This document shows positions 15,109 to 52,360 of a stretch of 64,000 bases of DNA, one piece after another. How positions within the stretch are numbered: the stretch's first letter is position 1; every line of letters starts with the position of its first letter. The stretch lies in the NCBI RefSeq assembly GCF_021869535.1, contig NW_026262668.1, forward strand, positions 31,124,001-31,188,000, given 5' to 3'. The DNA comes from Mytilus californianus (lineage: Eukaryota). The translations under genes were made by a program, and so were the position numbers. The notes beneath the pieces are model-generated. The model was not told where the DNA came from, searched no databases, and saw only the letters and a program-made list of their open reading frames with translations.

Positions 15109-15313
15109 ATGTCGACATTATCGGACAAAGAAGAAAATTATCTTCAATTGATCAGGCTGTTAAACAATTTTGCCATGCCAGCTTTGAGATTAAAATTTAA
15201 TCAGTATTTTCCTCCATCATTACTGACTGCCATATTAAAAAGAGAAGAGTCTAGACTTAAAGCCATGAGAATATTAACTGGAAAGCAGATGAAACTATTG
15301 TATCCAGCAACAG
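15109..15313 (+). CDS. HEPN-STAND-ankyrin protein, exon 1 (N-terminal part of DZIP3/hRUL138-like HEPN domain)
   Basis: ATG at 15109; MSTLSDKEENYLQLIRLL...QMKLLYPAT-G; phase-1 donor GTATAT at 15314. Confidence 0.8.
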
Positions 15314-15419
15314 GTATATATACTTTAAGTTATCTGATTAAAATCGTCCACCTGTGTCAATATTTAGGAAAAAATCAAATTATGAGGCAGACTTTTAAGT
15401 GTCGGTAATATCCTCTTAA

Positions 15420-16600
15420 ATGCATTTGGTATAGGTTATTGAGTAACTGGACATTATCATTGTATCTGTAAAGGTAAATTCAAACACTTTGAAAGATTTG
15501 TTTTGTCATTGAGAAGGTTTTGTATGAATTCTGCTTCACATGAGTATAAAAAACAAGTTAGTCAGTAGGGGTACACAACGAGCACACATTGAAATACTTC
15601 TGTCTGTTGAAATATCAATCCATCATACACAAATATATTGTCGAAGAAGAATTCAAGAATTTTGATGGTACCCTGTATCATCTTCGGTGTATTTGCTTTT
15701 GGAATCGGTGCGGAAAGAAACTGCAACGTTTTAAAAAGATTGTGACTGAAAAATTTTGGGCGACCTTTTTTTTAGAATTTAAAGAATCCACATCTGATTG
15801 ACACCACAGGTTGTATATACCTCATCACAAAATTCCCGACGGACATTTTTTTTACTATAGAAAGAATTGTGGAATGAACTTCAGGAAGATGTTTATTCGA
15901 ACATATTGACGACATGGCTACATGTATATACTATTCTTTCTAAGGTTTTTGATAAGGGTTGAGGTTTAGGTACCAAGTATAAAGACAGGATTTTTATCGT
16001 CCTTTTTATGTTAAAACCAAAGGAAATGAGAAATGATTTGTGATTTTTGGTAAATCCTTACTTTCGTTAATTATATTGGAATCCCAGTTTGATGTGAATT
16101 CCCAGTTCTTATGATTCAAAATAATGATGCATGCATATTAAAACAATATTGTTGGAGTATTTGTCTGCTGGAACATCATCATATTCGTCCTAGATGCATT
16201 GGAGCATGAACAACCTAGGGTTTCTTAAAAGGGTATGTCGTATTTTTTTAATGTGCTTCTGAAAGAAGACCGAACAGCTTTGATCTTTTAAGATAAAGTG
16301 TCCAGTTTTGGTTCATCTGGCTTGCGCTTTTCCAATTTTCTAGCATCGTCATCAACAGCATCCATCATTAACCTAAAGTTCTTCTTCAAGTTGGATAACA
16401 ACTCTCTAACTTGTTCGCTGTTTACGATACTAATGTATACAGTAATAACATGACCGGCGAGACTATATTTATTTGGGGACGAAGTATAAGAGCAAACAAG
16501 AGGTTTGGATTTTACATCCTTGAGGGTATAGGTCTCTTATAGCATTATTTAAGAGAAAGAATGGTCTCCTTGAAGGAGAATATTTAAAAAAAACTATTGT
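15420..16600 (-). mobile_element. Heavily decayed Naiad-type PLE RT in intron 1
   Basis: Residual FEFTFRYNDNVQLLNN (from FNFTFRYIDDVLSLNN), a degenerate CAPLLxxLFLYSxEAEFIQNL and VPADK. Confidence 0.55.
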
Positions 16601-17201
16601 CCATTAAAGATAATTTTCTTTTAAGAGCTCTTAGTCTTAAAAAAACCAATGTAATCTTTAAAAAGAGAAGAACCACTCTTGGTGATATGATGGTATACAT
16701 TATCATATGTATTCCATGTTTTGATACTATTACTTTTTATGGTTAGTAATTTGCGTGCGTTTTGTATTTTTGCAAGTTTGTTCGTCTTTTGTGTCAATAA
16801 AGATTTTTGTTTTGAAAAAAAAAACCAGTAACTCACTATGAGACCGATGTATGAAACACGACGTAAAACGATTACCATTTCTGACCAGATTTTTCTGATA
16901 TTGACCATAATGTACGACAGGCGTTTCAACCTAATGCAATTGCCAGTAATTGAAAGAAAAATTAAGCGGTCAATAATTATTTCATGTTAAAGAAATCATT
17001 ATTATACAGAAGGATAATATGGTAGGAACAAACTGCTGTTTAGGATAAAATAAATAAAAGTAAGAATTACTAGAATCGCGATCACAATTATAAAGCTCTT
17101 AATATAGGGTGCTCGGGGAAAACTATTTGCATTCAGTAAGCATCAGATCCTAAACTTTGTGATCAATTCATATTTACTTATTACTTCTGTCTCATTTAAA
17201 G

Positions 17202-17431
17202 GTGTGTCAGTTTCTGACGACTTCGACATCACACTAATGGTATGTCTCTTGCGTAATCTAACAAACATTGTACCACCAGTCAATGGATTTGATGTTCTTC
17301 CTCCAAATCATGATGTATGTGAAGGAGCAGACCTAGCAAGAATAAAATATTACCGGAATTTTGTATCCCATGAAAACAGAGGCAAACTTCCAACACACCA
17401 GTACAACGATATATGGGCAGATTTAGTGTCG
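17202..17431 (+). CDS. HEPN-STAND-ankyrin protein, exon 2 (HEPN core with RxxxxH)
   Basis: Acceptor TTTAAAG, phase 1 matching exon 1; FDITLMVCLLRNL...ADLARIKYYRNFVSH (RNFVSH at 17354-17371); phase-0 donor GTATGT at 17432. Confidence 0.85.
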
Positions 17432-18519
17432 GTATGTTTTGTCTGATATAAAGTGACACAAACAACAATATCAGTTGGCCTGTTATTGTCCTTTGATGTT
17501 TGTCCTCCAAAAAAAGTCCCTGGTGTAGACCGTGTATTTCTTTTTTTGTTTTTGTACACCTTCCTTATTTAATTCCAAATGTTTTATGCCTCGAAAAGCA
17601 AGTATGGGATGTAAGTACACTGTAAAAAACAATGGGTCATTGCCTTTTGGTTCTCATTGGTGGTTGTCTCAAACGTTACAATTAGAACTGATGTGATTGA
17701 AATATGCCCTATAACACGATTCCCCTGAGTTTGTTAGGTGTCCTCAACTAACAAATGACGAAAAAAAAAATCTTACATCCTTCTCCAAGTCAGAAGTGAG
17801 TATCGACAATATAAGCGTCTCCTTCTAGGCATATTCAACACCGATCTTATGTTTAATAGTTTAATGCATAACTATACTTGTATTGTTATCCAATTTTCAA
17901 TACATATGGTCCTACATCCTGTCCATATTTTAGCATTGTATAAGGTTCTGGGTGGTACGACCAGTTTTGAATGAATTCTCTAACAGGGACTTGGTGAGCT
18001 GAATTTAAAATCAATTTTGGCATTTGGGTCAACTGTCTACTTCATGATTCAAATATTCAATTTTCAAAATGGCAAATATTTGTAAAACCTTTATCAGTAG
18101 ATATATATAATTTTTGTCTGACCTTAAAAGTAAAGAACCACTAATTAGGGCCCAGTAAGAAAGAAGATACAAGAAAGTAGTACATATTGTAAACAAAATA
18201 GTTCCTGCGCATAGCTGTAACTTTGTCAAAATATTTGGGTAATCTTGGTATCAAATGAAAGCTTGAGGACTTGGGATCACTGTATAAATAAAGGCAACAG
18301 TAGTATACCGCTGTTCGAAATTCATAAATCGATTGAGACAAAAACAAATCCGGGTTACAAACTAAAACTGAGGGAAACACATCAAATATAAGAGGAGAAC
18401 TACGACACAACAGAAACACAACATTAAAATGTAACACCCACAGAAACGAACTATAATATAACAATGGCCATTTTCCTGACTTGGTACAGGACATTTTAAA
18501 AAAAAAATGGTGGGTTGAA

Positions 18520-20440
18520 ACAAGTACAAAGTTGAAGAGCATTGAGGACCAAAAGTTCCAAAAAGTTGTGACTAATACGGCTAAGGTTTTCTGTCTGAGA
18601 TAAGAACATCCTTATTATCTAGAATAATTCATACTTTTGCAAACAGTAAATTTATAAAAATGACTATATAATAGATATACATGATAACACCGAAGTGGTG
18701 ACTAACTACAGAATAAAAACGGATACATAAAACAACATAAACCAGCACATAAAAATTCACAGCCGAGTTAGCCAAAGAAACCAACGCACAAAGCGACGTC
18801 ACATTTGAATTTCTAAAAATTTCCCCAAAATAGGATAAAATTAGGATAGAATTCAAGATTAGGTTTGTAATACTCATATAACATTTATTATTAACAATGA
18901 AAATTACAATACTAATTAATATAAAATTGTGGTAGTAATTAGATAATTAATTGTATTATCTAGCTATGTCGGTGTTTCTTCTAAATCAAACTGTAAACCA
19001 AATATATCGTATAAGTTTAGTTGACCCAAACTAAAATCTAATAAATGAACTGGGTGATTAATTATCTTTACCATAACACCCGAATACAACAGAAGAAAAT
19101 AAGATTTACAACTACAAACGATAAGACAATTGACAAAATCCGATGAGAATAACAAATATAACATCAAAACTAAATACATGAATTTTGGATAGAAAAGTAC
19201 CGTGACACGTACCCGCGTCTTATAGCAATGCGAATTCACACTCAGCAAAACAGTCACAATCGGGAATAAGTCACGTTCGGTAATTAAAAGATCAGACGAC
19301 GTAATGTCAAACCACAATCTAACACGTGGTAAAAATGTCCTTAGTTAGTTTGGACAAAGACAAATCGTATGGATCAACCTATTCGTGATGGTGTCCGTAA
19401 AATTTACGGAGTGTCATTTTTAATCTGTCCTCCTCATAACTTTGTTGGAGCAGTTTCTGCGTTAGGAGCACACTCCTGTATATGAAGTCCGTATAGTGTG
19501 AACATGCACGAGCATAACGTATCAACTGAGATATGTAAACACCATACGAAGGGGCAGAGGGTATGTTACTGCTGAGAAATGGGAAATTGATAATTGGGAA
19601 GTTGAAATCGTCCCGTTTATCATAGATTTTCGTGTAAAGTCGTCCATCTGTGTCAATATTGAGGAAAAGATCAAGGTATGAAGCAGTCCTTCTTGTATCA
19701 GTAGTATCCTTAATTTCAAGTTCACTGGGATATATGAGATGTAAGTATTTCGCAAGGTGCTTTTTCTTTTTGCCTTTTAGAAGGTTCTGAATGAATTCTG
19801 CTTCATACGAGTACAAAAACAAACCGGCCAGTAGGGGTGCACAATTAGTACCCATTGGAATACCGACTGTCTGTTGAAATATAAATCCTCCAAACTCAAC
19901 AAATATATTGTCGATCAAAAAGTCCAGCATTTTGATAATATAATCTTCAGTATATTTTCTGGTAGATTCAGTGTGGTTCTTCACAAAATATGAATTATTG
20001 TAACCGAAAACAAGAAATTTGTATCTACGATTCCCATTTTTTATAGAAAAAGCTCTGTTTAATGAGATGGTGAAGTCGATCTTTCAATTGAGCATGGGGA
20101 ATAGTAGTGTAAAGCGTAGAAAAATCAAAAGTCTTTATGTTGCTGCAAAATTGCAAAGATTGTGATAGAAAATTAAGCAGTAGATCTTTCGAATTTTTGA
20201 GAATCCACATCTGGTTAACACCACTATACACATCACAATATTTTTGAAGCCCATATTTAACTGTAGAAAGAATAGTACTTTAGAAAGATGTTTAGTCGAA
20301 CATTTTGATGACCTAGCTATGTATCGTTCTTTATATGGAGTTTTGTGAAGTTTTGGTATCCAGTATAATGATGGTAAATTTTCTTCGTTTTCTTTGATGT
20401 TGATACCCCTTGTTGAAAGTTTGTTTTGATAATGAAAAAT
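18520..20440 (-). mobile_element. Second Naiad-type PLE in intron 2: 5'-truncated RT (19319-20440) with the YIDD motif deleted, plus 3' region
   Basis: YWIPKLHK, TFDFSTLYT, GIPMGTNCAPLLA, YGVYISQLIRYARAC. The 3' region ends in sequence (18520-18720) shared with the hammerhead-bearing repeats. Confidence 0.85.
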
Positions 20441-21129
20441 ATATAAAATCTTAATAGTAGGGTACATTTTCCCTGTTGTTTAGATCGGAAGTACATGTTT
20501 TTGTACTACCAAACTTCCAGGAACCAGTGCGCTCTAATATGCATTTAAAGCAAATTAAAGGTATGTTGAATTTTCCAGCACAAGCCATTAATAAGGTATA
20601 GTTTTGAAATGAAATGACTGCCACTTTATTTGAACTTAACGAGTCTTGTGTAGACAAAAGGCACGTTTGTAATTATATCTTTTATATTATTGTCAAATAA
20701 TGTGTTTAATCTAGATAGAGATTTATGAAACCTACTACATGTAGGTACTATTTCAATCGTTTAATATGTAAACAGAATAATGTTTAAAGTCCTTCACTGC
20801 AAATGCTTGGTCTATGTCTGACTTCAAACAATTAAGATCATAGTGGAGAGTTTAACGGAAATTTTGGGAATTTTAAAACAGAAACGAAATCCATTTGCAT
20901 ACATGTTTATTTAGATTGATAGTCTTTATGTTTTAACAAATTAAATATATACATAAATAACTTGAAACAAAATGGAGCGGCGTCACTAAAATGAGATAAT
21001 TTTTAAAAAGCAAAATAAAATATGCTATTTTTATGGAAAACGAATGATTTCCTTTTGTGACAAAGTATGTTAAGATTGTGTCGTATTTTATACACTAGTT
21101 TTCATCAATTATGAAACATGTACTTATAG

Positions 21130-21214
21130 GCTGTGGCTCGTCTCAATCCTACTATGCAAGTACTTTGTGATAGGTTGAAATTAGAGAAGCTGAAAACAGA
21201 GTGTCAGTGTCATG
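21130..21214 (+). CDS. HEPN-STAND-ankyrin protein, exon 3 (end of HEPN domain / linker)
   Basis: Acceptor TTATAG, phase 0; AVARLNPTMQVLCDRLKLEKLKTECQCH; phase-1 donor GTAAGA at 21215. Phases match exons 2 and 4. Confidence 0.75.
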
Positions 21215-22345
21215 GTAAGAAATATATAGCTTGAAAACAACAACAAAATTAAACACGTCGATAAAGTTTCGCTTATTGAGACCTGCCGAATTGCATTTCG
21301 GGAACTCAATTTGATTTCCGTTACTTTCCCTAATTTTCCGACGCCTGTGCCAATCATGTTTTCTAGATTTATGTTGATTTATGGTAAGAAAAAAGACATT
21401 CATAAATCTTCGGTTATATGATGCATAACTTCCTTCTGATGACTTACCGAGGTAGTTTTACATAGGTGTCATTTGTAGTAAAAGAACTGCTGAATGCACT
21501 CTGATGTTGTTGGTGGTGCTTGTGTTATTCACAGTCTAGTTTTTTGTGGAATGCTGATTGTCTTTCCGTAGTTTTACTTTTAAGCAATCCAGTCGTTTGT
21601 TTTGATACGGCTTATGGTTCTTTTTGTGTTTCCTCCCTTGGGATATTATACTTTTTAGGGGTTCAACTTGGGATTTGATTGACCGATGAATTGTATGGTC
21701 ATCTCATGATTCGAAGTATTATGGGGCGCTTTGTATACAAAGATCTGTAATTCAATGTATACTTGGCAGTGACTCATAAATTACATGCTTAAAGAATAGA
21801 ATAAAAAAGGATATTTAATGCTTTTCTACGACATTAACGAAGAATTACAAATTTGTCCTCTAACCGATGATAATATACTCTTAGCACACAGTCTATCATA
21901 AAACCATTGCAAAACAGTCCACAAGGGTATCATCCGATTTGATTGAAACTTAGTGTGCTTAAACGACATTATGAAATAAGTCCATTAAACAAATGTTTCA
22001 TCTGGTTCCCATCACTGGAAGTTTAGAGATGCTATAAAGCATCAGGAACCAGTTTATCCCTGTTGAAAAAAGTATTGACAAACCCACCAAACTCCAAGGT
22101 AAATTCAAAAAGGGGAAGCCTATAAAACCCGACACAATCAAAAGTTAGGTAATATCAACCAACGGAACGAATGGAAAACAACTGCCATATTCCTGATGAC
22201 TAGGTACATGTATTTTTCGAAGAAATGTTTTGTTAATCCTGAATATATAGCTAGCTAAACTTTCCACTCGTATGTCAGTTGTTTATATTTCTAATTATAA
22301 TAACAATCTTTATTGTCATATAAACAAATGAAACATGTTAGTGAC

Positions 22346-22520
22346 AAAAACATACATATATATATATATGAATGCAATATAAATTGAACATGGATTATTA
22401 ATCATTAATGCAGTCAAGAAATATATATATATATATATATATATATTTAAAATATACTTTTTCACTTTTTTGGTGTTTTGGAAAATGTTTTTTGTGCTGT
22501 ATTTAGATATATATATATAT
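22346..22520. repeat. (TA)n microsatellite tracts at the 3' end of the intronic LINE
   Basis: Three TA runs near 22346-22360, 22411-22446 and 22507-22520. Confidence 0.8.
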
Positions 22521-25500
22521 AAAACATGAAAAATTAAGCTGCTTCTGTCCTCAGTTCTAATGACTGTTTAACAAAATAGCCGATTAGTTTCACATGTTCT
22601 GTAGATATAGGGTTTAATATTTTAATAACTTTTTGGTCTTTTGGAAGTGACATAAATTCGTTTTCCCATTTTAATTTTGTAAACAGATCCAATCTTAATT
22701 TATTATTTATTCAACACTCCACAACTCTAAATTTTACAAAAGTTTAAATGAACTTTTTCAGTGGGAGTTTTGTCTATAAAATAGAATGGATCCAAATTTT
22801 TCCCACTTTTTTCAGCCCGAATTGTAGCCCTGTGATAGGTCAAATAACTATTCATATATGAAATTTCTGAGTTGTAAGTCAACACAGGGCGTACTAATGT
22901 GTCAAAAAGATTATTTGACACATGCATAGGAAGATTTGCCAGAGAGGAAGATTTAGCTTTTATAGAAAACACGTCAAGACTATTTTGGCCTTTCTAGCAG
23001 ATCCTCTAAACTATGATTCAGGGTACCATTACTTTTAAGTAGCGAACCTAAAAACTTGTATTCAGTAACATTTTGTAAAAAAATATTTTTATAATTAATA
23101 AATGATTCCACATTACTATTACTGTAATGTTGAATAACCATACTTTTGTTTTTTTTAATATTGAGCGTGAGCTTCCAGTTATCACAAAAAACACTCAGGT
23201 TATTTACACTGTTTTGAAGACCTTCTTTACTCTCTGAGAGTAAAATTAAATCATCAGCAAATAAAAGGGATCCAACGTTTAAATCAACTAATTTAGGTGG
23301 CTTAGAGTCTTCATTTGTAGTGACTTGCACTTAATCATTAATAAAAATATTGAAAAGAGTGGTACTGATAGAGTCCCCCTGTTTGACTCCTCTGAATGTT
23401 TTAAATGAGCTTGTACAAAGATTATTCAGTTTCAGAGCTGTTTCAGTTCTAGAAAATTGATTTTTTATTACATTAAATAAATTCTTCCAAACCCCAATTT
23501 TTGCTAATTTATTAAGCAATCGATTTCTCCATACTGAATCAAATGCTTTTTGTAAATCTATAAAGCATATAAAAAGTTTTCTTTTATTCTGATGTATATA
23601 TCTATTAATGATAGTTTTCAAAATCAATAAACTGTCTGAGGTTTTGTGATCTTTCCTGAATCCAAACTGAGAGTTTGAATATTTATCTTTCATTAAAGAT
23701 GTTAGCCTCTTATTCATGACAGCACTAAATAATTTTGAAATACAATTCACAAGTGATATTCCTCTATAATTAGATGGGTCAGACTTACTCCCAGACTTAT
23801 GAAGAAGAGTTAAATAAGATTTATTCCACTGTGCTGGATAAATTCCAGTTTTCAATATCAAGCTAAATAATTTTGAAATAGAAGTCAATGTAACAAGCCT
23901 GCTGTGTTTAATTATTTCATTTATGATGCAATCTGGTCCACTGGTTTTCCCTTTCTTTAATTTATTCAATACAAGCTTAATTTCCATTATTGTTATAGAT
24001 TTATCTGTCTCAGAATTGTATGAGAGACTTTTTTCAAAGTTAAGTAAACTATCATTTATAGTAATTTCAAAATTTTTATTTTCATCAACACAAATTCCTT
24101 GATCTTGAACATGTTTTATAGTTTTATCAATATCTTCAAGTAATTCTTTTATACCGTCCTCTTGGTCTTCATCTTTATCTTCAAGAGATCTCAAAATTTT
24201 CCAAAATTCTGCGGAATTGCTCTGTAGAGTATTTAAAGGTTTAGCACACTACAGTTCTTTATATTCCCTCTTTTTCTGTTTAACATTTTTCTTGAAAGAC
24301 TAAGTTATAAAAGTATCTCTGTTTTAGATTGTTATTAAATGGCTCTATCCTTATTTGGCTTGAAAGTGAGTTAGGAACTTTCTTTTGTTCATAAATAGAA
24401 TAATTTGACCATTTTTGTTTTATTATTTTCCTTTTCTTTTCTTTTTTCTTTTAGGTCTTACCATTTTACAAGACTCATCCGCTATATCACAAAACAATTA
24501 ATTTAGATCTTCTGTAGCTTCGTCGACTCCTTTTTGATTTTCAGAAAAAGAATTATTTTCAAAATCAATAATTTTTCATTGCATATTTTCACTAGAAAGT
24601 GCATCAATAATTTTATAACTTGATTCATTTGACCACTTATAACCTTTGGTTGCATTCCAGCCAGTAAAAATTTAGTGTTTAAAATTTTCTTGTTTGAAAT
24701 TGCATTTTACCATCACTTTAATTTGAGCATGGTCGGACAAATAGTTAAAATCTTGAGTAATAAAATAAAGAACTGAGGAAAGAAGACTTTCACTTATTAT
24801 GGCATAATCAACACTACTTAAGCCATTTTGAGTCAAACAAGTTAAAAATCCTAATGAGTCACCTAAATACCTGCCATTTAGTATTCTGAGTCTAGAAGAC
24901 ACACACATATCTAATAAATGTTTACCATGATTATTAAATTTTTTGTCTTGATTATTTCTTTTCAGGACTTAATCTATAAGATAATTTTGCGGTAATACAT
25001 TTCTTTCACAAAAATCATTTAAATCTATAGAATCATTTGTGATATAACCAGGATTTAGACTTGTTCGTGAATTAAAATCACCAATGAAGAGAATTTTCCC
25101 TCTATTTGCAAAAAAAACCTAATTTCATTTTCTAAAGATTCGAAATAATTTTCATAATGATTTGAATTTGATGGGGGTATGTAAACTGTACATAAATATA
25201 AATCTTTATCAAAACCAAAAATGTTTCTATCAAGTTTTAACCAAAGTCTATTTTCAGATGTGGTTCCTTTTTCTACATATGTTATACCTTTAGATAATGT
25301 TTTTCTGTATAATACAATTATACCACTACTATTCCTTCTTGCTTTCTTTTTTTTTCTTTCTACATTTAGATATTGAAACATAATCTGGTAGATTAGTTTT
25401 TTGATTAACTCCAGTCCATGTTTCTGTAAGAATATTAATATCACTGTTTAATTTTTCCAAAAATAATTGATCATTCATTTTATCACCCAAACCACGAACA

Positions 25501-26900
25501 TTCCAGGCAGATATAGATAGCTGACTCAAGTTTGTATTCATATTTAAACGATTTAGTATTAAACTTGTAATGGACAAGAAATCAAATATGACTGAAATCT
25601 ATTAACCTATTAATTTTTTGTATACATTCATTTTTATACATATAAAGAGAGATAACTCTGTTTTTCTATTTGTTAAGTAACTTGGTATGTTTTGAGTAAT
25701 TTATGAATATTTTTTTTAATTAAACAATTAACCATAAAAGAAATGTGATTACAAAATTATAAAATACAAACACTTTGAAAGAGGTTTTCCTACATTTCAA
25801 ATCATCATGATCATACCATGGTGATTATTTCCTCTCAAGCTAAAATGCTATAAAAATATATATGTTTTTTTTATTTATTTCTCAATTCGAACATCTATTA
25901 TTATGTAATTTTCTTCCCTGAAATATTTTTGTTCTGCTCTTTCAGAGCCGTCTCTGGATATAAACATAGTATGTTCTAAATTGTTGAAAATGGGGAGTAC
26001 AGTGTATTTATTAAAACAAAGCAAAATAATGTTAATACAAATGTCTATACCTTTACACATATAAACTACATTTACTTGTTATTTCTATATTGGGTTTCTT
26101 AAAACAATTATTTAAGCATCAATCCCTGAAAAAGTTATCAAATTTATAAAATGACATGTTTAAATGTTTAAAGAAAATTAACTACTAACAAAACTGTCTT
26201 GTAACACATCTTAAACACAAGCAAAACTATAATTTTCTATCTTGACCCATGCCATTTTCTGTCATGTAATAATATTTGAAGTAAGTTATAAATGTTATCA
26301 TCGTTACTACTTCCCGAATACTGATTTCTAGTGTCATACGTGTTCCTCCAATTCTGGTGATTTTAGCTCCTACTAGATAGCGGCACTTGTTTTAGCCTAT
26401 TATCATATGTAGTGTAGCCTTTGTCTGCAAAGTTCTGATTTGTATAATTGTTTGCATAGAAGAATGGCTTTCCATAGCTTTTTGAGTTCTTGGTTTGGTT
26501 TACCACAGACTTCAAGTTTCTAACATAGTTTTTTATACCATTTTCATTTAGGTGAATTCCATCATAGTAGTCCCTTTGATGCATGTCTTCAAAATATATC
26601 AGTTTCAAATCCCTATCATGACATTTTTTTAACAGGATATTAAATTGACATCGTTTAATTTCATATTCTTCTGTTTTGTAATGTTCCCTATAAAAACGGT
26701 GTAAAATTTGTCCAAGAACAATTTTGGACTCTGGATAATTTCTAGTTATTTGTTCCACTAAGTCTTCATATTGACCAATTACCTCTTCAACGTCACCTTC
26801 TTCCGGGTCATTTGACCCTATCTGTAGCATTATAACACTTGTCTCATTGTTTATTATTATAGTTCCGTTTCATTGACAAAATTGGATGAGAAACCCAAAC
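22500..26900 (-). mobile_element. Near full-length decayed LINE (RTE-X/CR1-group) with SGNH esterase-like ORF1 and APE-RT ORF2, in intron 3
   Basis: ORF1 remnant has QIGSND...YDGIHL. APE: SISAWNVRGL, LTETW, SSVDYAI, SDHAQI. RT: NYRGISL, FIDLQKAFDSVWR, GVKQGD, LLFADDL. Several frameshifts. Clade assignment is tentative. Confidence 0.85.
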
Positions 26901-27439
26901 CAACAAAAGGTAATATTTTACATGAACACTACCAATTTATGAACCTTTAAATTCATGAATGAGGAAACCAAAAAAATGTGAGTTATTTAAAGGGAGGTAA
27001 TCCAGTAAAAAATAATTTAAGAAAATCGCAAAAGTACATAGTTTTGAAACTAACCAGTCTTTGGTCCATTAAACATACAAAAATTATACATCCATTTGTT
27101 TTTTTTAAGAAGAGTTAATAATACATGTACCTAATAAAATGTGTGTGCTCTAGTTTAAGTACTTTCTAGAATTTTCCTTATAAAATGCCTAAAGTTACAA
27201 TTTCACTCGATGAATAAATAAATTTATATCAATCTGTAGATAATTTTGGAAATGTAAGTGTAACTTGCTCAAACGCATTGTTTAATTAACCAGGTTAGTC
27301 AAAGCAACAATGAACATATTACAATAGCAATATCTGATGCAATACATATTGATTTTCTATGGTACATTGGATCAATCAATTAATCGTAACCGCAATTCTG
27401 TCCTCTTTTTTTCGAATGTGACCTATCGATTTGACTTAA

Positions 27440-27690
27440 TATCAGGTTTGTACTCAAATAAGCAACACGATGGATGCCACATATAAAGCAAAATTAGCAT
27501 TCCTTTCCGGATTACCAGAGATCACCAGCGGATTTCGGTAGGGTTCGTGTTTCTCTGTCTTTAGTTTTCGTTGTTGTATTAAGCTATATAAAGTGTTCTG
27601 TTGTTTGTCGTTTGGTCGGTTTTCGTTTTTTGCAATAGCATTGTCGGTTTGTTTTCAACTTATGAGCTTGAATATCCCTTTCGATACTTT
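27440..27690 (+). repeat. Diverged copy of the Naiad-type 3' region (same family as 6795-7192)
   Basis: AGCAACACGA...GAGATCACC...GGGTTCGTGTT...GTCTTTAGTTTTC aligns by eye to the reverse complement of 6830-7100. Confidence 0.65.
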
Positions 27691-28263
27691 CTCCATTTAT
27701 TTATTAAAATTCATACATTTACAATTTCTCTAAATGAATCATGAATTTAAAATATCAATTTGTAGATAATTTTGGAAATGAAATGTTATTTTTTTTTAAT
27801 CATTTGAGTATTTAACAAGGTCAAAGAACCTTTATTTGTTGATCTTGTGTTCCCAATGATTTTTGAGGTTATAGTTTCTGACTTTTTATATAGTTTTTCA
27901 TTCAATATGATAAGCAAATAGAATACACTTCGTTTCAATTCGTCATCTAATGAGTCAATTTATGGTGTTCGTTATATCGTCGTTGTTGCAGATGTACTGC
28001 TGGTCACATTTCGTTTATTTGTTAATAAGATTGGTGTTTAATTTCTTAAAAATGGTTTTAATGTAAAATGGCAAAAACTTCAAATTGATTAAAATTACAC
28101 ATTTATGTGCAATGAATCTAACAAGAAGTCGTCTGAAAGTTTGCTAAAATAAAAAGTTGGTTTGAGCAAAATATTACGTCAAATTTATATGTATATTCGT
28201 CTCAGCAATGTGAGTACATTATTATAATCATCATTAAAGCAATTATTTTGTTTTTATTTACAG

Positions 28264-31200
28264 ATTCCCATCAAGTAGAAATTAACGCCTGGGAAATTAA
28301 AGATAAGTGCTTTGTTCCAACGTCTGCAGTTGAATATATATGTAATCATTTGCAAGTGAAAAATTGTATAACCGTCACAGGATTAAGAGGAATTGGAAAA
28401 TCTGTTACAATACATCATGTAGCATTAAAACTCCGAGATACAAAAGATTACATAATCATTCCTTGTCGTAGTCCTACCGAGATTCCACTTCATTTTAGAA
28501 AGGAGAGAAAAACACTTTTTGTAGTGGACGATATCTGTGGAAAATATAATATTGATATTAAGGAGGTCAATGAATGGCAAAAACATATATCAGACGAATT
28601 ATCTATTGTAAATTCAGGTGATATAAAAATTTTGACGTCAAACTGTTATAATGTCATTCAAGACCCTAGCTTCAAAACATTAAAAGTCTTAAATGACTAT
28701 GTCTATGATTTGTCTATTTCTGTTGAGGAAAAAGAAAATATTGCATTAAAATACTTACCACAAGATACTTATGAAGAAATTAAAGAATATATAGGACAGC
28801 TGGATTATTTTCCTCTTATGTGTGAGCAGTATACAACACGTCCGATAACTGATGCATTACATTTCTTTACTTATCCTTTCGACATTTTTGAAAAAGAAAT
28901 ATCTGCTATGAGAGAAGAGGACAATCTGAAATATTGTGCATTGTTTATATGTGTTCTTTTGAATGGTTTCATAAGAAAAGCAGATGTATTTTTGGATGGT
29001 TATACTTTTGCTGATGATGTTAACGCTCACAAAACAGAAATTTACGGAGCTCATTATGGAATTTCAAGAAATAAACTCCAAACACTGTTCGATCTATGTG
29101 AGCTCAATCGAGGAACATCCACTGAACGTTTATTTAAGCAATATGATTGTCTATTAAATACATACATGAAAAAGACGGGTATTTATTACCAATGTGTGCA
29201 TGACAAAATGTTTGAATTTCTGTGCTTCTACTTTGGAAAACATATGCAAAAGGATGTAATTTTACATTCCGACAGTAAAGTTATTAGGGACCATACACAT
29301 ATATTTTCCCTGAATGAAAATCATGATTTGTTTTCGATTTCAGTAGAACCAGATAATGAAAACCTATTTTTCTCCAGGATTATTAATGACATATCACAGG
29401 GAACAATTTATGATGTTTTCTGTAATAATCAAATGCAATTTAGTAGCTTTAGATCAAAATTTATAAATTTTCTTCAGTCCAATCATCAGCCAAATCTAAA
29501 AGCGTTATTGATGAACAAACAAGAAATACGGGACAACAGAACGGAACCAGTTACATCATTATATATAGTATGCAATAAAGGTTACCTGGATTTGGCTGTA
29601 TTCATATTAGACCAGACGGATAATTATTTTGACCAAAAGTTTTATCCTCTGAATGCTGCGGCTTCCGCTGGTCATTGTCATTTGATTGAGTTGATGATAT
29701 CTAATGGAGCAGATGTTAATTACCGGGATCAAAGTGGCCATACCCCTATGACTATTGCATGCATAAATAAACACAAAACAGCAGTGAAACTGCTCATCGA
29801 CAAAGGAGCTGACTTAAACAAAAGAACAAACAAAGGCCCAACTCCTTTGATGTGGGCATGCTCAAATGGTAACAAAACAATTGCCGAATTGCTTCTTACC
29901 CATGGCGCTGATATCGACAAATCTGATTACGAAGGGAAAACACCTGTGATGTGGTCCCGTAAACGCGCTGTGCATAACTTGTTCGGTTTTTTAATTTATA
30001 AAGGGGCTGATCTAAATAAATGCGACAATAATAGATGGACAACTTTGATGTGGGTATGCTTTTACGGGCTAACTGACATTGTAGACATTCTTATCTTAAA
30101 TAATGCTGATATTTTCCAGGTCAGCAACGAAGGCTGGACATCTTTCATGATAGCGTGTAAAAGTGACAAAGTTGATATTATAAAACTTCTAATTACAAAA
30201 GGAGTTGATATAAACATGAGAGATAACTTTGGTCAAACAGCATTAATGATGGCATGCACGGAAGGACACGTTAATGTAGTCAATATTTTAATTGAAAACA
30301 AAGTCGATATAGACTGTTGTGATAAATATGGAGTTACTCCATTGATTGCAGTATGCTCTCAAGGACAATTACTTTTAGCAAGTATACTATTAAAGGGCAA
30401 GGCTGATTGCAATAAAGCTGATAATGAAGGCTGGACTCCTCTAATGGCATCCTGTTTTAGTAATAATTACAAACTCACAAAGTTATTAGTTCAACATGGA
30501 GCTTATCTTAATCAAAGCAACAAGGACGGTGAAAGTGCTCTTTTGGTTGCATGCATGGGTGTTATAAACAGAAAAATTGCGTTTTTCGTTGACACAGGAG
30601 TTTACCTGAAGTCTTACGACAATGTTGATAAACGTGACCCCTGCAATAACGATGTTGCACTGTCAATTATCAAATTTCTACTAAAAAGAGGGGCCAATAT
30701 AGATCAAGCAGATAAGGACGGTTGGTCACCATTAATGTGGGCTTGCAAAAACAATTATTTAGAGATAGCGTCTTTGCTCATTGAAAAGGGGGCTGATATG
30801 AATAATGTTTCTTCTGATGGAAACACGGGGACGTCGATTCTACAAATGGCATTAGACGAAGAAAAAATGGATATGGTTAAATTGCTCTTTAATAGAGAGA
30901 TAAATGAACTGAAAGAGCTCATACAAGCAATCAAAAGCAACGACATGAACACGCTCGAGTTTTTAATTGATGATAAAATAAGATGCTTTCAAGAAAATTA
31001 TGAGAATGCTAGATTTTGGTGTCAATTAAACCTTGTTAACAAGAAAAGTTTGAATTTGATAAACGGGTGTGATGATCAAGGTAACAGCCCTCTTTATATA
31101 TCTTGTCGAGAAGGAAATATTGAAATAACAGAGTTCTTAATCAACAGAGGGGCCAACGTTAACTTGTCTTTCTGTGACGGCTCAACAGCTCTGGGAGCTG

Positions 31201-33032
31201 TGTATTCACAAAATACAGAACTTGTAGAACTTTTGATAAAAGCCGGGGCACATGTATACCCAGCGCTAGTACGTGCATTTAAATTACAACAAACAGCCAA
31301 AATCAACCTCTTACTTGACAAAATGCCTAAAATATGTTTGAATGATATGGTCGATAAATATTGTAAATATCACAAAACTGGTTCTGATGATTCGTTAATA
31401 GAAAACGGAACAGATATTGACTACAGCATTGTAAAAAAAATACACTGGTTAGCAGAGTCCATTGAACCCTCAACATGTTCAACAGCTCTAATATTATCAT
31501 GTCAAAATAGTAAAATAAATGTTACCAGAGCTCTGATCGAATTTGGAGCAGATGTTAATATTTCGTCAGAAAATAAAATAACTCCATTAATGTATGCAAG
31601 TTGTTATTCAAATGAAGCTATTGTACGTATGCTTGTAGAAAGACAGGCGAATGTCAATGACATTGATTCGAATGGCTGGAATGTTTTAAGATGGGCATTT
31701 CAAGGACAAAATATGTATAATGTGGATTACTTAATTGATAGTGGTGCCAATATTGAAACAACTTTTATATGTGCAATAAGAAACCAGGATTCGTGGATCA
31801 TTGATACGTTAGTGAAAAGAGGTACGCATTTAGACAGATTACTAGCTATCTCATGTGAATATGGAGATACAAGTTTGGTTGATTTATTACTTTGTAATGG
31901 TGCTAATATTCATTATCAAAATGACAACATGATGACACCTTTAATGACAGCTTGTAAGTTCGGAAACAAAGCCATCATTGACATATTGGTTGAACGAGGG
32001 TCTTCTGTTAATAACGCTCTTCTGACTGCAGTTAGATTAGGAGAAAGTTCCTTAGCAAAATGTTTAATTGAAAGTGGTGGAGATTTAAATTACATTTTTC
32101 TTGAATTGTGTGACAGAAAAGACAGAAGAGCACAAAACCAACTACTTTCACACGGTGTAAATATAAATAAAGTTCTCCATACCGCATGTTGCTCTAATGA
32201 TGTCCATGCTGTGAAACAAGTTCTGACTTTTGAAATTGACATCAATAAATGCAATAAAGAAGGTTTCACTCCTTTAATGACAGCTTGTTGGTATTCAACC
32301 GACGAAATATTTCAGATTTTAGTGAGGGATGGTTACGCCAACATTTTTCAATCACTTGTTTGTGCTTATGATAAAAAAGGGTTTTCCTTTTGTAAAATAC
32401 TATGTGCAAAATGCAAAAATGAAGATTTGGTCAAAACACTATTTGAGGCATCAGAAATTGGACATTATGAAATCATGCAGCTTCTAATTGAAAAGAAAAT
32501 TAACTTGAATCAAAACAATGAAAAGGATGATTCGCCTTTAACGATAGCATGTAGAATCGAGTATAACGCTCTTGTAGAATTACTGATAAAAAATGGAGCG
32601 GACACTGGTATGGCATTTATATCGGCTTTCAGACTAAATAAAGTGAGCACAGCTAAGTTATTGATAGAATGTGGTGCTGATGTAAACAAAGTTGATCCTA
32701 TTGAATGGAGTCCGCTGATATGGGCATGTTTTATCAGACAAGAATACATTACGAATGGCGAGAGTGTGTCGTCAGATTTTGATAGTATAATCGATCTTCT
32801 TATTTCACATGGCGCGGACGTTAACCTTGCTCTAAAAAAAGTATGTGAGAAAAAATTCGAAATTGATAGAGACAGCACTATCGAGTTACTTATTAACAAA
32901 GGAGCTGACATAAACCACCGTGACGAAAATGGTTGCAAACTGCTGACATTGTTGAAAAGAGATGGCAATGAACAATGTTTGAAACTTCTTGCGTTATACG
33001 GACGAAAAAAGAAAACATGCATCATAATGTAA
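28264..33032 (+). CDS. HEPN-STAND-ankyrin protein, exon 4: STAND-type NTPase (nSTAND3-like), more than 20 ankyrin repeats, polybasic CaaX terminus
   Basis: Open for 4.8 kb. Acceptor TTTACAG, phase 1. Walker A GLRGIGKS (28380-28403), Walker B LFVVDD (28515-28532), VHDKMFEF (HD-type) motif, repeated TPLMxAC...GADxN units, ends GRKKKTCIIM*. Confidence 0.92.
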
Positions 33033-43690: not shown

Positions 43691-45599
43691 GGCAATCAAA
43701 CACATAAGCCACATATCCTTATAATTTTTTTATATCAATGAACAAATTCATAATTGGTGTACGTAGATGCTTGAACAGTGGTGGATTTAGGGGCCCCGAC
43801 CCCCTTATGGAGCTACTTATAAGATAAATGCATAGACTATTTACAAGTATCACTCCAAACGTTTGCTTGCCTTGGGCAGGGCCCCCTTTTTTCAAAACCT
43901 TGATCCGCACCTCCAGAAACAGATGTAATTTGGTTCCGATTATGATTGAACACACACAATGAATGCACAAGTTTCATCTTAACAGATTATAGTAATCATT
44001 CTTACCAAGTGAGTATATATCGCGTAACAAACAATTTTCTTGGCTCTCTTTGTTGATATCCTGTCTTCGTTTCGAAATTCAAATTTCAAAATCATTTCCG
44101 GTGATAAAACAAAAGTCGATTCCGGAAAAGGTCGGTTTTCCGTAAGGCATATAAACGATACGAAAATTGAACTTAGTACAGTTACAGTTTTCATTTCTTA
44201 ATTTCTAAAATATACACGAACGAAATGAATAAACATTAAAGAAAGGTGATTGTTTATTAATACATTATTGCTTAATTTAATGTTGACTCTTTTGAATATT
44301 AATATAAGAAGGAATAAAATTTGACTTCAAGGATCTTCAAGATATCAATTAAGGATTTCAACCATAGTATCTTGCTTGTCATGATATTGATGAAATGTAG
44401 TACTATATCTTATCCTGAAAAGAACGAGCTAATTCCACAAATCGTTGTTTGTGGGGTTTTGAATCAAGTTTAAATAAAATGTTATTTTTATATCCGTAAA
44501 ATGTTGAATAAAATATCAGTAAGACTATTAAGTAATGTGTATGTCAGAATATTTTATAGAAAACATTTAGCTGATATTTTTATTTTATTTAGATTCAAAT
44601 TGAGATAGCTTTGCTTATAATCTCTAATTGCGAGATATAAGCTGTAGTGAATTTCTTTGGTGTAATATAGTTAATAATCAATCTCCTTTTTTAGAAGTTT
44701 TTTTTACCGATTGCGAAAAAAATCTTCTCAGAGATGATACCTATAAGTGTGTCTATTTGGTATCTTTTAATTATACATTGATCTCGTTTTTAGAAGTTTT
44801 TTTCTATTTCGAAAAAAATCCTCTCAGAGATGATGTCTATAAGCAATAATCTTATTTCTTTGAAATTTGCTACATCGGTCTCGTTTTTTAGAAGTTTTTT
44901 TCTATTTCGAAAAAAATCCTCTCAGAGATGATGTCTATATGCAATAATCTTGTTTCTTTGAAATTTGCTAAGCACTTACGAGTACGCTAACATTGCGCGG
45001 GATAAGAACGTGTATATACGTGTTGGCTTGTGATTGGTTCGTGAAATATATTCATAAATTGTTGTAGAGCAAAGGAGAAAGTTGATTGGTTAATGAAAAA
45101 GCATCATATGTTGAACAGAACTACGTCACACAGCGTATGACCTAACCTCTCAAATACTGAAATATTTCGTCATGTAATGTAATTTCCAAATATCTTAAAT
45201 TATATCTAATAAAGATGCAAGCATAGTAGTATTTTATATAATTTAATGCAATAATATGAATTAGTAACAGTAATATTACATGTGAATATAAATATATCAG
45301 CTCTTAAAGAATCTCACATCTGCGTACTAGTTGGTAAAAATTAACAAATTGTCCGAGACGGACATAATCTTGAAACTTTATAGTCTTTATAAAAATAAAA
45401 TAGAATGTAATACTAGTATCATTACCTGCTGAGTTAAACTAATTATGAATTCCAGATATTTTAGTACCAGCTGTGTCCATAAATTAATCCAGTTTTCATA
45501 AATATTATATATAATTATGTCGTAATGTTCCCTGAATTTTAATTTTGAGCACTTTGAGCACTGAGTATTGTTGTGTAAGTGTAATAATATGCAGTGTAG

Positions 45600-46418
45600 T
45601 TAATATTCGAAGTGGCGACGTCTTCCTCTGAACGATCCTCTGTTGTTTCTGCTGTTTCTATTGTCTCTCATACTGTTTTTTAACTCATCCATTTCCCTTC
45701 TGAGTTTTGCAAGTTCTGTTTCTTCTTCCCTCTGGGATTTCCTTTTTATCTGACCAACTTCATTTTTTAACTTCTGTACATCTCCTCCTCTCTCGTTTTT
45801 GATTTCCTCTTTACTAATTGGTTTTAGCGCTGCCTCTCTATATTTTTCTGCCCACTTTTCTTTGACTTCTTGCACTTGATTATTCAGTTTAGTAATATTT
45901 TTTCCGTTTTTGATTTTTGTACAGGCTTCCCTCCATATCTGTTCGCTATTAGTTTGCATTTTTTCCGAATGCTCCGTGGCTGCTTGTAACATTGTTTCCC
46001 GGAAACTTGTTCTAATGTTTTTATTGAGATCCTGAATTTTGCCTCAAAAGAAAAGTTCAGTGTCACTAGATCCTAGCTGTGGATTAAATGATGCCTTTTG
46101 TATCCTGGCATAGTCTGGTAATTCATCTCCTTTAAAACGTCTAAGGTCCCTTGTCAAGGTGGCGGTGTTGTGTCTCCTCGATAGCATTCCGTTAATGTTT
46201 CTAATACAGTTATTTATTTCTTGACTGTCATTGTCGTTCTCAAATTCTTCATCAAGATTCCCAAGATTGAAGTTGATTAGTATTATCTGGGGTAGAGTTA
46301 TTCTTTGTCCCGATGGTATCTCGTCATTCATGTTCCCTAATTCCAGGTCGGACTCTGTGTTTGACATGTTGTTCTGGTTACTAGGTTTTTTCTTTAGAGT
46401 CAGTTTGCTTCTATCCAT
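45600..46418 (-). pseudogene. Coiled-coil ORF of copy A with one premature stop
   Basis: Colinear with 50431-51249 except for a few substitutions, including CGA>TGA at 46044-46046. Confidence 0.85.
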
Positions 46419-47452
46419 GTGAATTCAGTAGAGTATTCTGTCAGATATAGTCACTGTCTAGGCGTATTTGTATTGCATCAAAGGTTTCCGCTGCATTGTT
46501 TTAGCACAAAGGACATTTCCTAAATGGTTTTACAGATTCCCATCAATGTTGTACCCATCAATAAATCTACATTTGATACGTTTTTGCGGTAGGTATATAG
46601 AACTTTGCAAGTGTGCTTTTATGGCTCAAATTATAAATTGACCATTTAATAATGTGATTTTAATTCCATAATTACTTGTATTCTTTCCGTCTCCGAGGTC
46701 TGCATTAAATATGCGAATCGACGTTATATTTAAAAAAAAACCAAACCATATTTTTTATAGATTGCTTTTTAAATAGAATTATTTTAACTTCAATTTTCAT
46801 CTGTAATGTAGTATTTAGGATATTATTTCAGTTCATATCACATCCCATTGTTCAATAATGCTGATTATCAGTATAATAGAGACAATGCATTAATAAGTCT
46901 ACTAGGAGATTACCAAGATTCACAAAATCAAGGCAATACGGAGGTTGGACAACGTGTGAAGCAGAGACTTCGAACATACAATTTATAAATAGCCGTGTCC
47001 ATTACCAATCCCAGCAAAACATTTGTCAATAGGTGAAATATATCGATTTCTGTATAGACTTTTCTAAAGTTATGCTGCGTATACTATACATTTATTTTGT
47101 GGTTATTTCTATCGTAGCCTGATTTGACCTTTTATAAATAGCCGTGTCCATTACCAATCCCAGCAACACATATTAACACCTTTGTCAATAGGTGAATTAT
47201 ATATCGATATCTGTACAGACTTTTCTAAAGAAGTTATGCTGCATATATATTTATTTTGTGGTTATTTCTATCGTAGCCTGATTTGACCTTTCTTATGTAA
47301 AATAATTACTGTTAGAAAGGTGTGTGTCTGTGAGAAGATTATCTGGTTTTACTCATTTGCATATAGGCAATGGTTATTCATCTGTAATGATGTGTGGTAA
47401 TTAAGTAGAAGTCTTCGATTTTCAATGATTTAAAAATGATTAAGCTGCACCT

Positions 47453-47610
47453 GGTGTTTCGGATATCATTTAGGTCATTTTTGACCAAGGCCGTAAATCT
47501 TCATCAGGTACCCTAGCCTTGTATAATTATAATTACTATGTAATTACAATTCGATTAGTTCTTGCTGTGGTAACATATCAAATGTAGTAGTATTTTTAGG
47601 GCACGACACC
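47453..47610 (-). ncRNA. Type III hammerhead ribozyme, copy A
   Basis: Same fold as 54405-54562, but the first stem II pair is A-C instead of G-C. Confidence 0.75.
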
Positions 47611-47682
47611 TGGTGAATCTGCAATATCATTATTATTTTTGTGTCCTTTCTTATCTAATTACTATTTAATTGTTTACAGTGA

Positions 47683-49653
47683 TTATAATTTTGCCGAGGT
47701 CAAGTACTCCTTCACGTTCTTATGTTTACCATAAGCAATCATAGGTGGTCTGGGAAATAAATTCTTAGCAATTATATCATTTTCAATTAAATGCCAATGT
47801 TTTCTTATTCGTCTTCCCAATTGTTTAAAGAGTGGATTGAATTTAGTTGCTAGTACTAGTGGTGGACAGTTTTGTTTATTTCTTTTTTTATAACATAATG
47901 TATTCTGTCTGTTTTTTCTCAGTGTTTTATCTATCAACGGATTAATTTCAGTTTCCAAGTATCCTCTTAGTGTAAGTTTTTGTTTGAATACTTCTATCTG
48001 TGTGTCGAGGTCATCTCTGTTACAACACGATCTAATGAACCTTGTAATTTCACCAATTATAAATCCTTTGAATACAGATGCTGGGTGAGCAGACGATTTT
48101 TCTAAGTATTGGTAATTATCTGTAGGTTTGCGATATAATTTGACATCTAATATCTTTTCTGTTTCAAATCGGGTTCCTTTAAATATTGTTACATCCAAAA
48201 ACTGTATTTGATTATTAGAGATTTCATGAGTAAATTTTAATAGTGGGTGAATACTATTTGCAATTTGGTAAAATTCCTTAAGAGATTGTTCGCTTCCTTT
48301 AAATAATAAGAATCCGTCATCTCTGTAGACAGAAAGAAGAGAAATGTCCGACGAGTATGGAAAGCGTTTCAATATTTCAGAAACGATTTCGTATATTCTT
48401 ATATCTGTTAAACTAGGCGACATTGGGGATACCATTGGAACCCCAATTTTCTGTTTGAAAATTTGCCCGTTGAATTCAAATTCATTATTTGCAAGGGCAA
48501 TTTTAAGTAATTCCAGTAAAGCCTTTTTGGGTGGCACTGGGATGTCAAATTTACACTGCATTATTAGTGGCCATGCTCTGTCAATTGCATTAATAATTTC
48601 AGTATGATGTAGATTGGTGTACATACTTGAAATGTCAAATGAGCTCATTAATATGTCCGCAGGTGCTCTTATTTTTTCCAATTTGTTTATGAAGGAAGTT
48701 GTATCTTGTGTGTATGTCCAAAATTTATTGACAACTGGTTTAATAAAATAATCGATCTATTGTGCAATTTTTTCCAATGGGCTATTACATAAGGATACGA
48801 TCGGTCTTCCTGGAACGTTTACATTCTGTAAATGATTGATATCAGTTTTAATCTTTTGTTTATCCGATTGATTAATTTTATGAAGTTTTGGTAGGAAGTA
48901 TAGTCTCCCTAATCTATTTCCCTGGTCATTTATTAAAAACTTAAATGTAACTTCATCAATGTAGGATTCATTGTGTAGACGATGAATAATAGTGTTGATA
49001 CTTTCTAGTATTTCCGTTGTATGAGATTCGTTAATTCTTTCATAGTGTACATTGTCATTTAATTGGTCTTTTGCCATTTTTATATATAGCTCTTTATCAA
49101 GAACAACTGTTGAGGAGTTTTTATCTGCCTTTTTGATAATGATACGATCATTTGAACGTAGTGATTGTAATGCTTTTCTTTCATTTTTAGGCAGGTTGTC
49201 CTTAAATGATTTAATTTGTATTTTTTCCAATTCAATTCTTGTCGAAAATAAGTAATTTTTAATTGCATTATTAGCCCAGTTTGGCTTATAACCACTTTTG
49301 GAAAGAAATGGATGACGATTGTATTGGTGAGATCCATCATCAAAATGATATTTGCATCTCATTTTACGGGCTAGTTCATTGAAGTCATTTATGAGAGTTT
49401 TCTTAGCGTTTCGAAGATTTGGACTAGGAATGAATTTAAGTCCTTTCGCTAGAACTAGAATTTCAGCATTACATAACTTTTCTTTTGTGAATATATCAAC
49501 ATATTTTGCAGCTCTCTGTACTTTTTCCGTGTGTTTATATTGTCGTCTCTTATGTTGTCGGTTTATATTGTATATTTTCCTTTTTTCTTTATTTTTAGTA
49601 ATTTTGCGTTTCTTATCACTAGCTTTGAACGATCTATTCTTTCTATTAGACAT
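47683..49653 (-). pseudogene. PLE reverse transcriptase (656 codons) with one in-frame TAG, no GIY-YIG
   Basis: LAKGLKFIP, KKADK, LPKLHK, GRPIVS, SFDISSMYT, VYRDDGF. TAT>TAG at 48757-48759; the two track ORFs are in the same frame. Confidence 0.9.
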
Positions 49654-50430
49654 GATTGGATGATTAGTCTTCCTTGTGTGCTTCTTCTTATATATATAAT
49701 AATTTACGTCTTTGAGTTTGAATTGATATGCTTAGTTCAGATTCAAATTGAGATAGCTTTGCTTATAATCTCTAATTGCGAGATATAAGCTGAAGTGAAT
49801 TTCTTTGGTGTAATATAGTTAATAATCAATCTACTTTTTTAGAAGTTTTTTTTAGGCTATTTATAAATTGTATGTTCGAAGTCTCTGCTTCACACGTTGT
49901 CCAACCTCCGTATTGCCTTGATTTTGTGAATCTTGGTAATCTCCTAGTAGACTTATTAATGCATTGTCTCTATTATACTGATAATCAGCATTATTGAACA
50001 ATGGGATGTGATATGAACTGAAATAATATCCTAAATACTACATTACAGATGAAAATTGAAGTTAAAATAATTCTATTTAAAAAGCAATCTATAAAAAATA
50101 TGGTTTGGTTTTTTTTTAAATATAACGTCGATTCGCATATTTAATGCAGACCTCGGAGACGGAAAGAATACAAGTAATTATGGAATTAAAATCACATTAT
50201 TAAATGGTCAATTTATAATTTGAGCCATAAAAGCACACTTTCAAAGTTCGGTATACCTACCGCAAAAACGTATCAAATGTAGATTTATTGATGGGTACAA
50301 CATTGATGGGAATCTGTAAAACCATTTAGGAAATGTCCTTTGTGCTAAAACAATGCAGCGGAAACCTTTGATGCAATACAAATACGCCTAGACAGTGACT
50401 ATATCTGACAGAATACTCTACTGAATTCAC

Positions 50431-52180: not shown

Positions 52181-52360
52181 GAGATTGATTATTAACTATA
52201 TTACACCAAAGAAATTCACTACAGCTTATATCTCGCAATTAGAGATTATAAGCAAAGCTATCTCAATTTGAATCTGAACTAAGCATATCAATTCAAACTC
52301 AAAGACGTAAATTATTATATATATAAGAAGAAGCACACAAAGAAGACTAATCATCCAATC

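Follow-up and report, generated by a model that had tools for sequence, protein, structure and literature searches.

We analysed a stretch of 64,000 nucleotides from Mytilus californianus (NCBI RefSeq assembly GCF_021869535.1, contig NW_026262668.1, positions 31,124,001 to 31,188,000 of the forward strand), which is called the window in the following; coordinates are counted from its first letter unless another locus is named. Between positions 15109 and 33032 its plus strand carries what is, as judged from the sequence, a single-copy, intact mussel gene of four exons for a cytosolic protein of 1762 amino acids. The predicted protein combines a DZIP3-like HEPN domain as its N-terminal part, a STAND NTPase and a long array of ankyrin repeats, and the gene belongs to a bivalve family already known from computational studies and from the annotation of public databases. 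We consider it moderately probable that this intact member of a lineage-expanded family codes for a ligand-triggered STAND receptor whose HEPN head is an RNase.

Structure of the four-exon gene

Exon 1 (15109-15313, plus strand, 205 nt) contributes 68 1/3 codons, beginning with the start codon, and encodes the N-terminal HEPN helices; an in-frame stop lies ten codons upstream of its ATG. Exon 2 (17202-17431, plus strand, 230 nt) encodes the core of the HEPN domain including the Rx4H motif, and exon 3 (21130-21214, plus strand, 85 nt) the final helix of HEPN together with a short linker rich in Cys. The large exon 4 (28264-33032, plus strand, 4769 nt) encodes the STAND NTPase module, the ankyrin array and a polybasic CaaX tail, followed by the stop codon. 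From the exon lengths the splice phases are 1, 0 and 1. The donors read CAG|gtatat (exon 1), TCG|gtatgt (exon 2) and ATG|gtaaga (exon 3), and the acceptors, which are preceded by pyrimidine-rich tracts, ttaaag|G (exon 2), cttatag|G (exon 3) and tttacag|A (exon 4). Thus all three introns are canonical GT..AG introns and all six splice signals are intact. The joined coding sequence has 5289 nt, i. e. 1762 codons, with the terminal stop codon as its only stop, and the 64-kb window contains no run of N. A preliminary description of this DNA, made from its letters alone, had proposed a gene of about 1762 amino acids in which three small exons are spliced to one big open reading frame (ORF) by GT-AG sites in phases 1, 0 and 1. 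This model was borne out: the exon borders are exact, the joined exons form one open frame, and a paralogue has the same structure.

In exon 4, 1588 codons are open. A random codon would be a stop with a frequency of 7.9% at the local base composition, and a frame of this length would arise by chance with a probability of about 3e-57. The first in-frame Met of exon 4 is residue 359 of the model, which lies past both the Walker A and the Walker B motif. Exon 4 therefore needs upstream coding exons. Exon 2 was matched by four mussel and oyster proteins from NCBI in tblastn (E 1e-13 to 1e-26), and the tblastn search of the window with all family proteins revealed no homologous exon in addition to the four.

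The paralogue is an M.californianus protein from NCBI that is 75% identical to the window gene (P0003, named 'serine/threonine-protein phosphatase 6 regulatory ankyrin repeat subunit B-like'). Its locus, L003 (JAKFGE010000017.1, GCA_021869535.1), has exons of 205, 224 and 85 nt followed by a large exon, with phases equal to those of the window gene. P0003 starts at the homologous Met, the acceptor of the large exon is at the same position before DSH(Q/K), and the NCBI model joins the HEPN exons to the big exon. DNA similarity between the window and L003 is confined to the exons and to transposon copies; the introns are unrelated. The ratios of nonsynonymous to synonymous substitution rates (dN/dS) between the two genes, calculated according to Nei and Gojobori, were 0.34 for the HEPN, 0.24 for the STAND and 0.36 for the ankyrin part at dS values of 0.6-0.8. 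This indicates that all three parts have evolved under protein-coding constraint.

Similarity to three paralogous loci (L001, L002 and L003) begins exactly at the acceptor of exon 4, with the residues DSHQ. Transcript contigs of L001 and L002 were considered as evidence of splicing and rejected. They are unspliced and carry intron sequence upstream of DSHQ, and support only the position of the acceptor.

More distant homologues contain the three parts in one chain as well. Four NCBI proteins from Saccostrea echinata, S.cucullata and M.californianus (P0004-P0007) each have the Pfam domains PF18738 (HEPN_DZIP3) and PF20720 (nSTAND3) together with ankyrin repeats. They align over exon junctions 1 and 2 without a single indel and share the stretch W...F..T...C.(I/V)(T/V)G..G.GKS, which begins just inside exon 4. 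In P0004 and P0007, a coiled-coil linker of 60-90 residues separates the HEPN from the STAND part; the subfamily of the window gene has no such linker, and an exon for it was sought in intron 3 and not found. When the public protein collection was searched with the STAND region of exon 4, the best match was 58-66% identical and there was no near-identical protein. The locus thus appears to be unannotated.

Domains of the predicted protein

The joined product matched HEPN_DZIP3 with an E-value of 9.7e-32 (110 bits, cut-off 27). The match spans residues 36-171 of the protein and positions 1-141 of the 144 in the profile, and this end-to-end coverage was reached only when exons 1-3 (173 residues) were joined. 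The motif RNFVSH occupies residues 120-125 (17354-17371, in exon 2). In an alignment of six mussel and oyster sequences R120, N121 and H125 are invariant, and so is the preceding ADLARIK helix. An AlphaFold2 model computed from a six-sequence alignment is all-alpha with eight helices (predicted local distance difference test score, pLDDT, 75; predicted template modelling score, pTM, 0.71). The best match of this model in an exhaustive VIA search was the HEPN domain of S.mutans Csm6 (111 residues) with a Z of 7.0, which is in the noise range of helical bundles. The top 50 also included HEPN domains of the Cas13a, b and d type, AbiF, E.italicus Csm6, AF_0298 and the sacsin HEPN domain, likewise with Z values in the noise range. 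The assignment to the HEPN superfamily hence rests on the sequence; the evidence from the fold is consistent with it, and is middling and not decisive.

The STAND module as a whole, with nucleotide-binding, helical and winged-helix-like domains in the AlphaFold2 model, extends over 28266-29615 (plus strand) up to the first ankyrin unit. Within it, the P-loop domain at 28311-28757 (plus strand) matched nSTAND3 with an E-value of 8.8e-20 (71.4 bits, cut-off 27.2; positions 1-153 of 155 in the profile). The Walker A motif GLRGIGKS lies at residues 213-220 (28380-28403) and the Walker B motif LFVVDD at residues 258-263 (28515-28532). The model of this module (450 residues, pLDDT 76, pTM 0.74) gave 177 matches at E <= 0.001 when it was compared with the PDB by Foldseek. 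NOD2 came first with 5.9e-7; other leading matches were SAMD9 (9zjs, 2.2e-6), NLRP3, NLRC4, a wheat resistosome, EfAvs5 (9jap, 1.4e-5), Apaf-1 and CED-4. Foldseek assigned a probability of 1.0 to these leading structures, at TM-scores of just 0.36-0.41, which are low because the orientations of the domains differ. Sequence searches of the PDB with the HEPN profile and with the STAND region found no solved relative.

The ankyrin array, a putative sensor, follows at 29550-32921 (plus strand). Pfam detected Ank_2 in 11 stretches (E 1.9e-143) and Ank (E 7.7e-122), and a hidden Markov model (HMM) built from the repeats themselves resolved 31 units between residues 603 and 1726, mostly spaced by 33 residues; 20 of the 31 had E-values below 1e-10.

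The preliminary description had read from the letters a DZIP3-like HEPN domain with an intact RNFVSH, the two Walker motifs and more than 20 ankyrin repeats, and had named HMM searches as a check. All of these features were recovered in the joined product at the positions given above, by the two Pfam matches and by the 31 units of the repeat HMM. The three-part layout stands on Pfam, on the exon structure of the paralogue and on the single-chain proteins of oysters and mussels. The label NLR-like, which had also been used, was only partly appropriate. The order of effector, NTPase and repeats is indeed that of NLRs, but the NTPase is nSTAND3 instead of NACHT, and ankyrin units take the place of leucine-rich repeats (LRRs). 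In the spliced product no match to NACHT (PF05729) was obtained with Pfam at E <= 0.01, and C-terminal to the NTPase the Pfam scan found no LRR, only ankyrin families.

The protein ends with a polybasic stretch and a CaaX box, GRKKKTCIIM, directly before the stop codon (33000-33032, plus strand). The two closest paralogues end with RQKTKCIIT (P0001) and RKKKKCIVM (P0002), and the tail is absent from the more distant P0004-P0007 and from the truncated P0003. By its sequence, this K-Ras4B-like tail is conserved in the subfamily, and prenylation is predicted. Only two features go slightly beyond published descriptions of the family, the nSTAND3 core and the conserved CaaX tail.

Proposed mechanism and alternative explanations

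An oligomerising, RNA-cleaving immune receptor triggered by a ligand had already been put forward in the preliminary description, and this is a plausible proposal. The mechanism that we favour is inferred from STAND receptors (NLRs, Apaf-1, Avs) on the one hand and HEPN RNases (RNase L, Ire1, Cas13, Csm6) on the other. The ankyrin array would keep the NTPase closed and ADP-bound until a ligand that derives from a pathogen or signals danger binds and relieves this autoinhibition. Nucleotide exchange and NTP-dependent oligomerisation would then bring the HEPN heads together, and the paired heads would form a composite Rx4H site that cuts RNA, which could be host tRNA, rRNA or mRNA or viral RNA. 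As a result translation would be shut down or the infected cell killed. The tail is probably farnesylated and would, together with the polybasic stretch, anchor the protein to a membrane in the manner of K-Ras4B and of prenylated guanylate-binding proteins (GBPs).

If this mechanism is true, the protein would correspond directly, in an animal, to the bacterial defence proteins built from effector, STAND NTPase and repeats, with the cutting of RNA as its output, and it would provide a first function for a very large, fast-evolving bivalve family and for the DZIP3 HEPN domain. Irrespective of the mechanism, public protein sets apparently lack the gene, and its effector head is lost when only ORFs are viewed. 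The locus is also a candidate for bench work, being clean and intact, with a linker that is short and a tail that is complete.

A more far-reaching and rather doubtful possibility is that the CaaX tail is functional and defines a farnesylated, membrane-resident STAND receptor of the Avs5 type. Such a receptor would patrol the membrane like prenylated GBPs, and its RNase head would cleave RNA at the site of membrane-bound pathogens or of compartments for viral replication. The DZIP3 HEPN family would thereby gain its first biochemical activity.

Several observations weigh against a receptor with an RNase head. In the comparison of the HEPN model with the PDB by Foldseek there was no match at E <= 0.001, and the Z of 7.0 obtained with VIA falls short of the value below which the tool itself advises caution with helical bundles. 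Human DZIP3 has been characterised as an RNA-binding E3 ligase and is not known to be a nuclease. In the papers searched, RNase activity was not reported for any DZIP3-like HEPN domain, and no bench experiment on a DZIP3-like HEPN-STAND protein was found. Read depth was zero on exons 1, 2 and 3, and no joints were found at the predicted splice sites in the stretch tested (15225-21224). Finally, the public model of P0003 deviates from the expected structure at two places. Its exon 3 is joined to an internal acceptor (L003:23937), by which the P-loop is skipped; the frame that starts at the conserved acceptor (23395 of L003) is open and encodes intact Walker A and Walker B motifs. Moreover, P0003 stops about 95 residues early (around 28000 of L003) and lacks the CaaX tail, and the family includes decayed copies. 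The gene may be wrongly annotated at these places, or they may point to an alternative isoform or to decay of the copy.

Possibly, the HEPN head lacks nuclease function altogether. It could be a module for RNA binding or protein interaction in a signalling scaffold whose output is recruitment, as has been proposed for human DZIP3 and the sacsin HEPN domain. The lack of published RNase activity in the papers searched and the weak structural matches of the HEPN model fit this explanation, and the isolated sacsin HEPN domain is reported to bind RNA (PMC13669270). However, R-N-x3-H is invariant in the mussel and oyster homologues, including the Asn after the Arg which is typical of active HEPN RNases. 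Furthermore, 194 of 202 DZIP3-like HEPN proteins of the pearl oyster keep Rx4-6H (Takeuchi et al. 2022, PMC9646362), which is unexpected for a mere binding module. We therefore regard a purely binding head as not very likely.

The expression data bear on a second alternative, namely that this copy of the gene, although it looks intact, is silent or has died recently, as an unexpressed duplicate without present function in a family of fast turnover. For the RNA test, sequences from one raw M.californianus RNA-seq run and from three 'mollusc metagenome' RNA assemblies were aligned on 15225-21224. The sample of the raw run comprised about 10.3 million reads, or 6% of the run, and the stretch contains 379 exon bases. 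The entire RNA signal in it came from a multi-copy repeat in intron 2 (18025-20800). No indexed sequencing run contains exon 4 as RNA. Silence would be in line with the zero depth on the HEPN exons, with the absence of a near-identical public protein, with the C-terminal truncation of the nearest annotated paralogue and with the retroelement debris that fills introns 2 and 3. Yet the sensitivity of the test was low: at about 1 transcript per million (TPM) roughly one fragment is expected on the 379 exon bases, so that zero depth neither supports nor refutes transcription, and 6% of one library has little power at low expression. In addition, the 1762 codons are free of stops, for which the chance is vanishingly small in exon 4 alone, the six splice signals as well as the catalytic and NTP-binding motifs are intact, and dN/dS is far below 1 in every part. 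A silent copy thus seems unlikely to us.

It is very improbable that the locus is transcribed as two units, one a small gene for HEPN only and the other a gene for STAND and ankyrin that has another 5' exon. In favour of two units, no junction read in the test on 15225-21224 joins the HEPN exons to exon 4, intron 3 is 7 kb long and contains a retroelement, and HEPN-only proteins are abundant in the pearl oyster (PMC9646362). Against them, exon 4 offers no in-frame ATG before residue 359, beyond the P-loop, exon 3 ends in phase 1 without a stop and exon 4 starts in the complementary phase, the paralogue has the same arrangement and is joined likewise by NCBI, HEPN, nSTAND3 and ankyrin repeats form a single chain in the homologues from oysters and mussels, and the window contains no alternative homologous exon.

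Related systems and repeats in the window

DZIP3-like HEPN domains on STAND proteins are not new. Anantharaman et al. (2013) list fusions of the DZIP3 HEPN domain to ankyrin repeats and to NACHT in their Table 1, describe lineage-specific expansions in Nematostella, oyster and Capsaspora and argue that such architectures tie RNase action to apoptotic or defensive responses (PMC3710099). In the pearl oyster, more than 50 proteins carry an N-terminal HEPN domain on NACHT, an arrangement 'overrepresented in the bivalve lineage', and degradation of viral or transposon RNA has been proposed for the HEPN proteins of this species (PMC9646362). DZIP3-like HEPN domains on NLR-like proteins were also found in coral genomes (PMC10236652) and, likewise, in a survey of Aplysia. 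As the immune-RNase reading of the family is given in all three papers (PMC3710099, PMC9646362, PMC10236652) and the layout is present in the NCBI annotation, the novelty implied by the preliminary description was overstated.

With these bivalve and cnidarian proteins the window gene shares PF18738 N-terminal to a STAND NTPase followed by repeats, the conserved Rx4H, the lineage-specific expansion among bivalves and the proposed antiviral or anti-transposon RNase role. Unlike most of them, which are HEPN-NACHT proteins, it has nSTAND3 as the NTPase, ankyrin repeats instead of LRR, TPR or WD40, and the polybasic CaaX tail. The exact combination HEPN-nSTAND3-ankyrin is described in none of the three papers, and is present in P0004-P0007 of NCBI.

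The NTPase of bacterial Avs5 belongs to the nSTAND3 family (bioRxiv 10.1101/2025.07.08.663546). Avs5 proteins (SIR2-nSTAND3-TPR/Sel1/PPR) resemble the mussel protein in this domain and in the order of effector, NTPase and helical-repeat sensor, and EfAvs5 is among the fold matches of the STAND model. In contrast to Avs5, the effector here is HEPN and not SIR2, the sensor is an ankyrin array and the gene is eukaryotic and spliced. With the PADLOC models no Avs match was obtained; there was a weak match to the candidate family PDC-S73 (E 9.7e-7).

RNase L, a further related system, combines an ankyrin ligand sensor with an RNase of the HEPN superfamily, and its ligand-induced dimerisation or oligomerisation leads to antiviral shut-off of translation. 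The coupling of ankyrin sensor and HEPN-superfamily RNase is also predicted for the mussel protein, whereas RNase L (ankyrin-pseudokinase-KEN) has the reversed domain order, no STAND NTPase, another HEPN family and, with 2',5'-oligoadenylate (2-5A), a ligand without known counterpart for the mussel gene. The KEN domain is classed as HEPN in Table 1 of PMC3710099. Human SAMD9 and SAMD9L are, as the mussel protein is predicted to be, large cytosolic antiviral proteins with a STAND-like NTPase core and an RNA-cutting effector, and SAMD9 is among the top fold matches. Their effector is a tRNA-Phe anticodon nuclease (PMC10246899). This nuclease is not HEPN, an ankyrin array is absent and no relationship at the sequence level was detected. 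Human DZIP3 (hRUL138) founded the Pfam family to which the mussel HEPN domain belongs as well. It is an E3 ligase in which this domain is joined to TPR and RING, and it has neither a STAND NTPase nor an ankyrin array.

Outside the gene product, the window contains several repeats. The multi-copy repeat in intron 2 (18025-20800, strand not assigned) has a core unit of about 235 bp at 18285-18518. RNA depth on the core was about 150x in the raw run and in the hundreds in the RNA assemblies. Most of the reads are 95-99% alike, and their loose ends heap at 18284-18287 and at 18518/18519. A copy with 95% identity is found at 33101-33336 of L003. The repeat looks like a SINE (short interspersed nuclear element) or another short dispersed element transcribed from many loci.

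Intron 3 harbours a degraded retroelement similar to a LINE (long interspersed nuclear element) at 22727-26830, on the minus strand and thus antisense to the gene. Its ORF at 23331-24194 matched the reverse transcriptase domain RVT_1 (E 1.3e-24), and upstream of it on the minus strand an ORF at 26363-26830 resembles a GDSL esterase (E 2.8e-6). This is the known layout of CR1/L2-type elements with an esterase as ORF1. Further reverse-transcriptase ORFs, at 47683-48681 (minus strand) and 53238-54332 (plus strand) within 44591-55043, matched RVT_1 with E-values of 1e-6 to 8e-10 and belong to retroelements.

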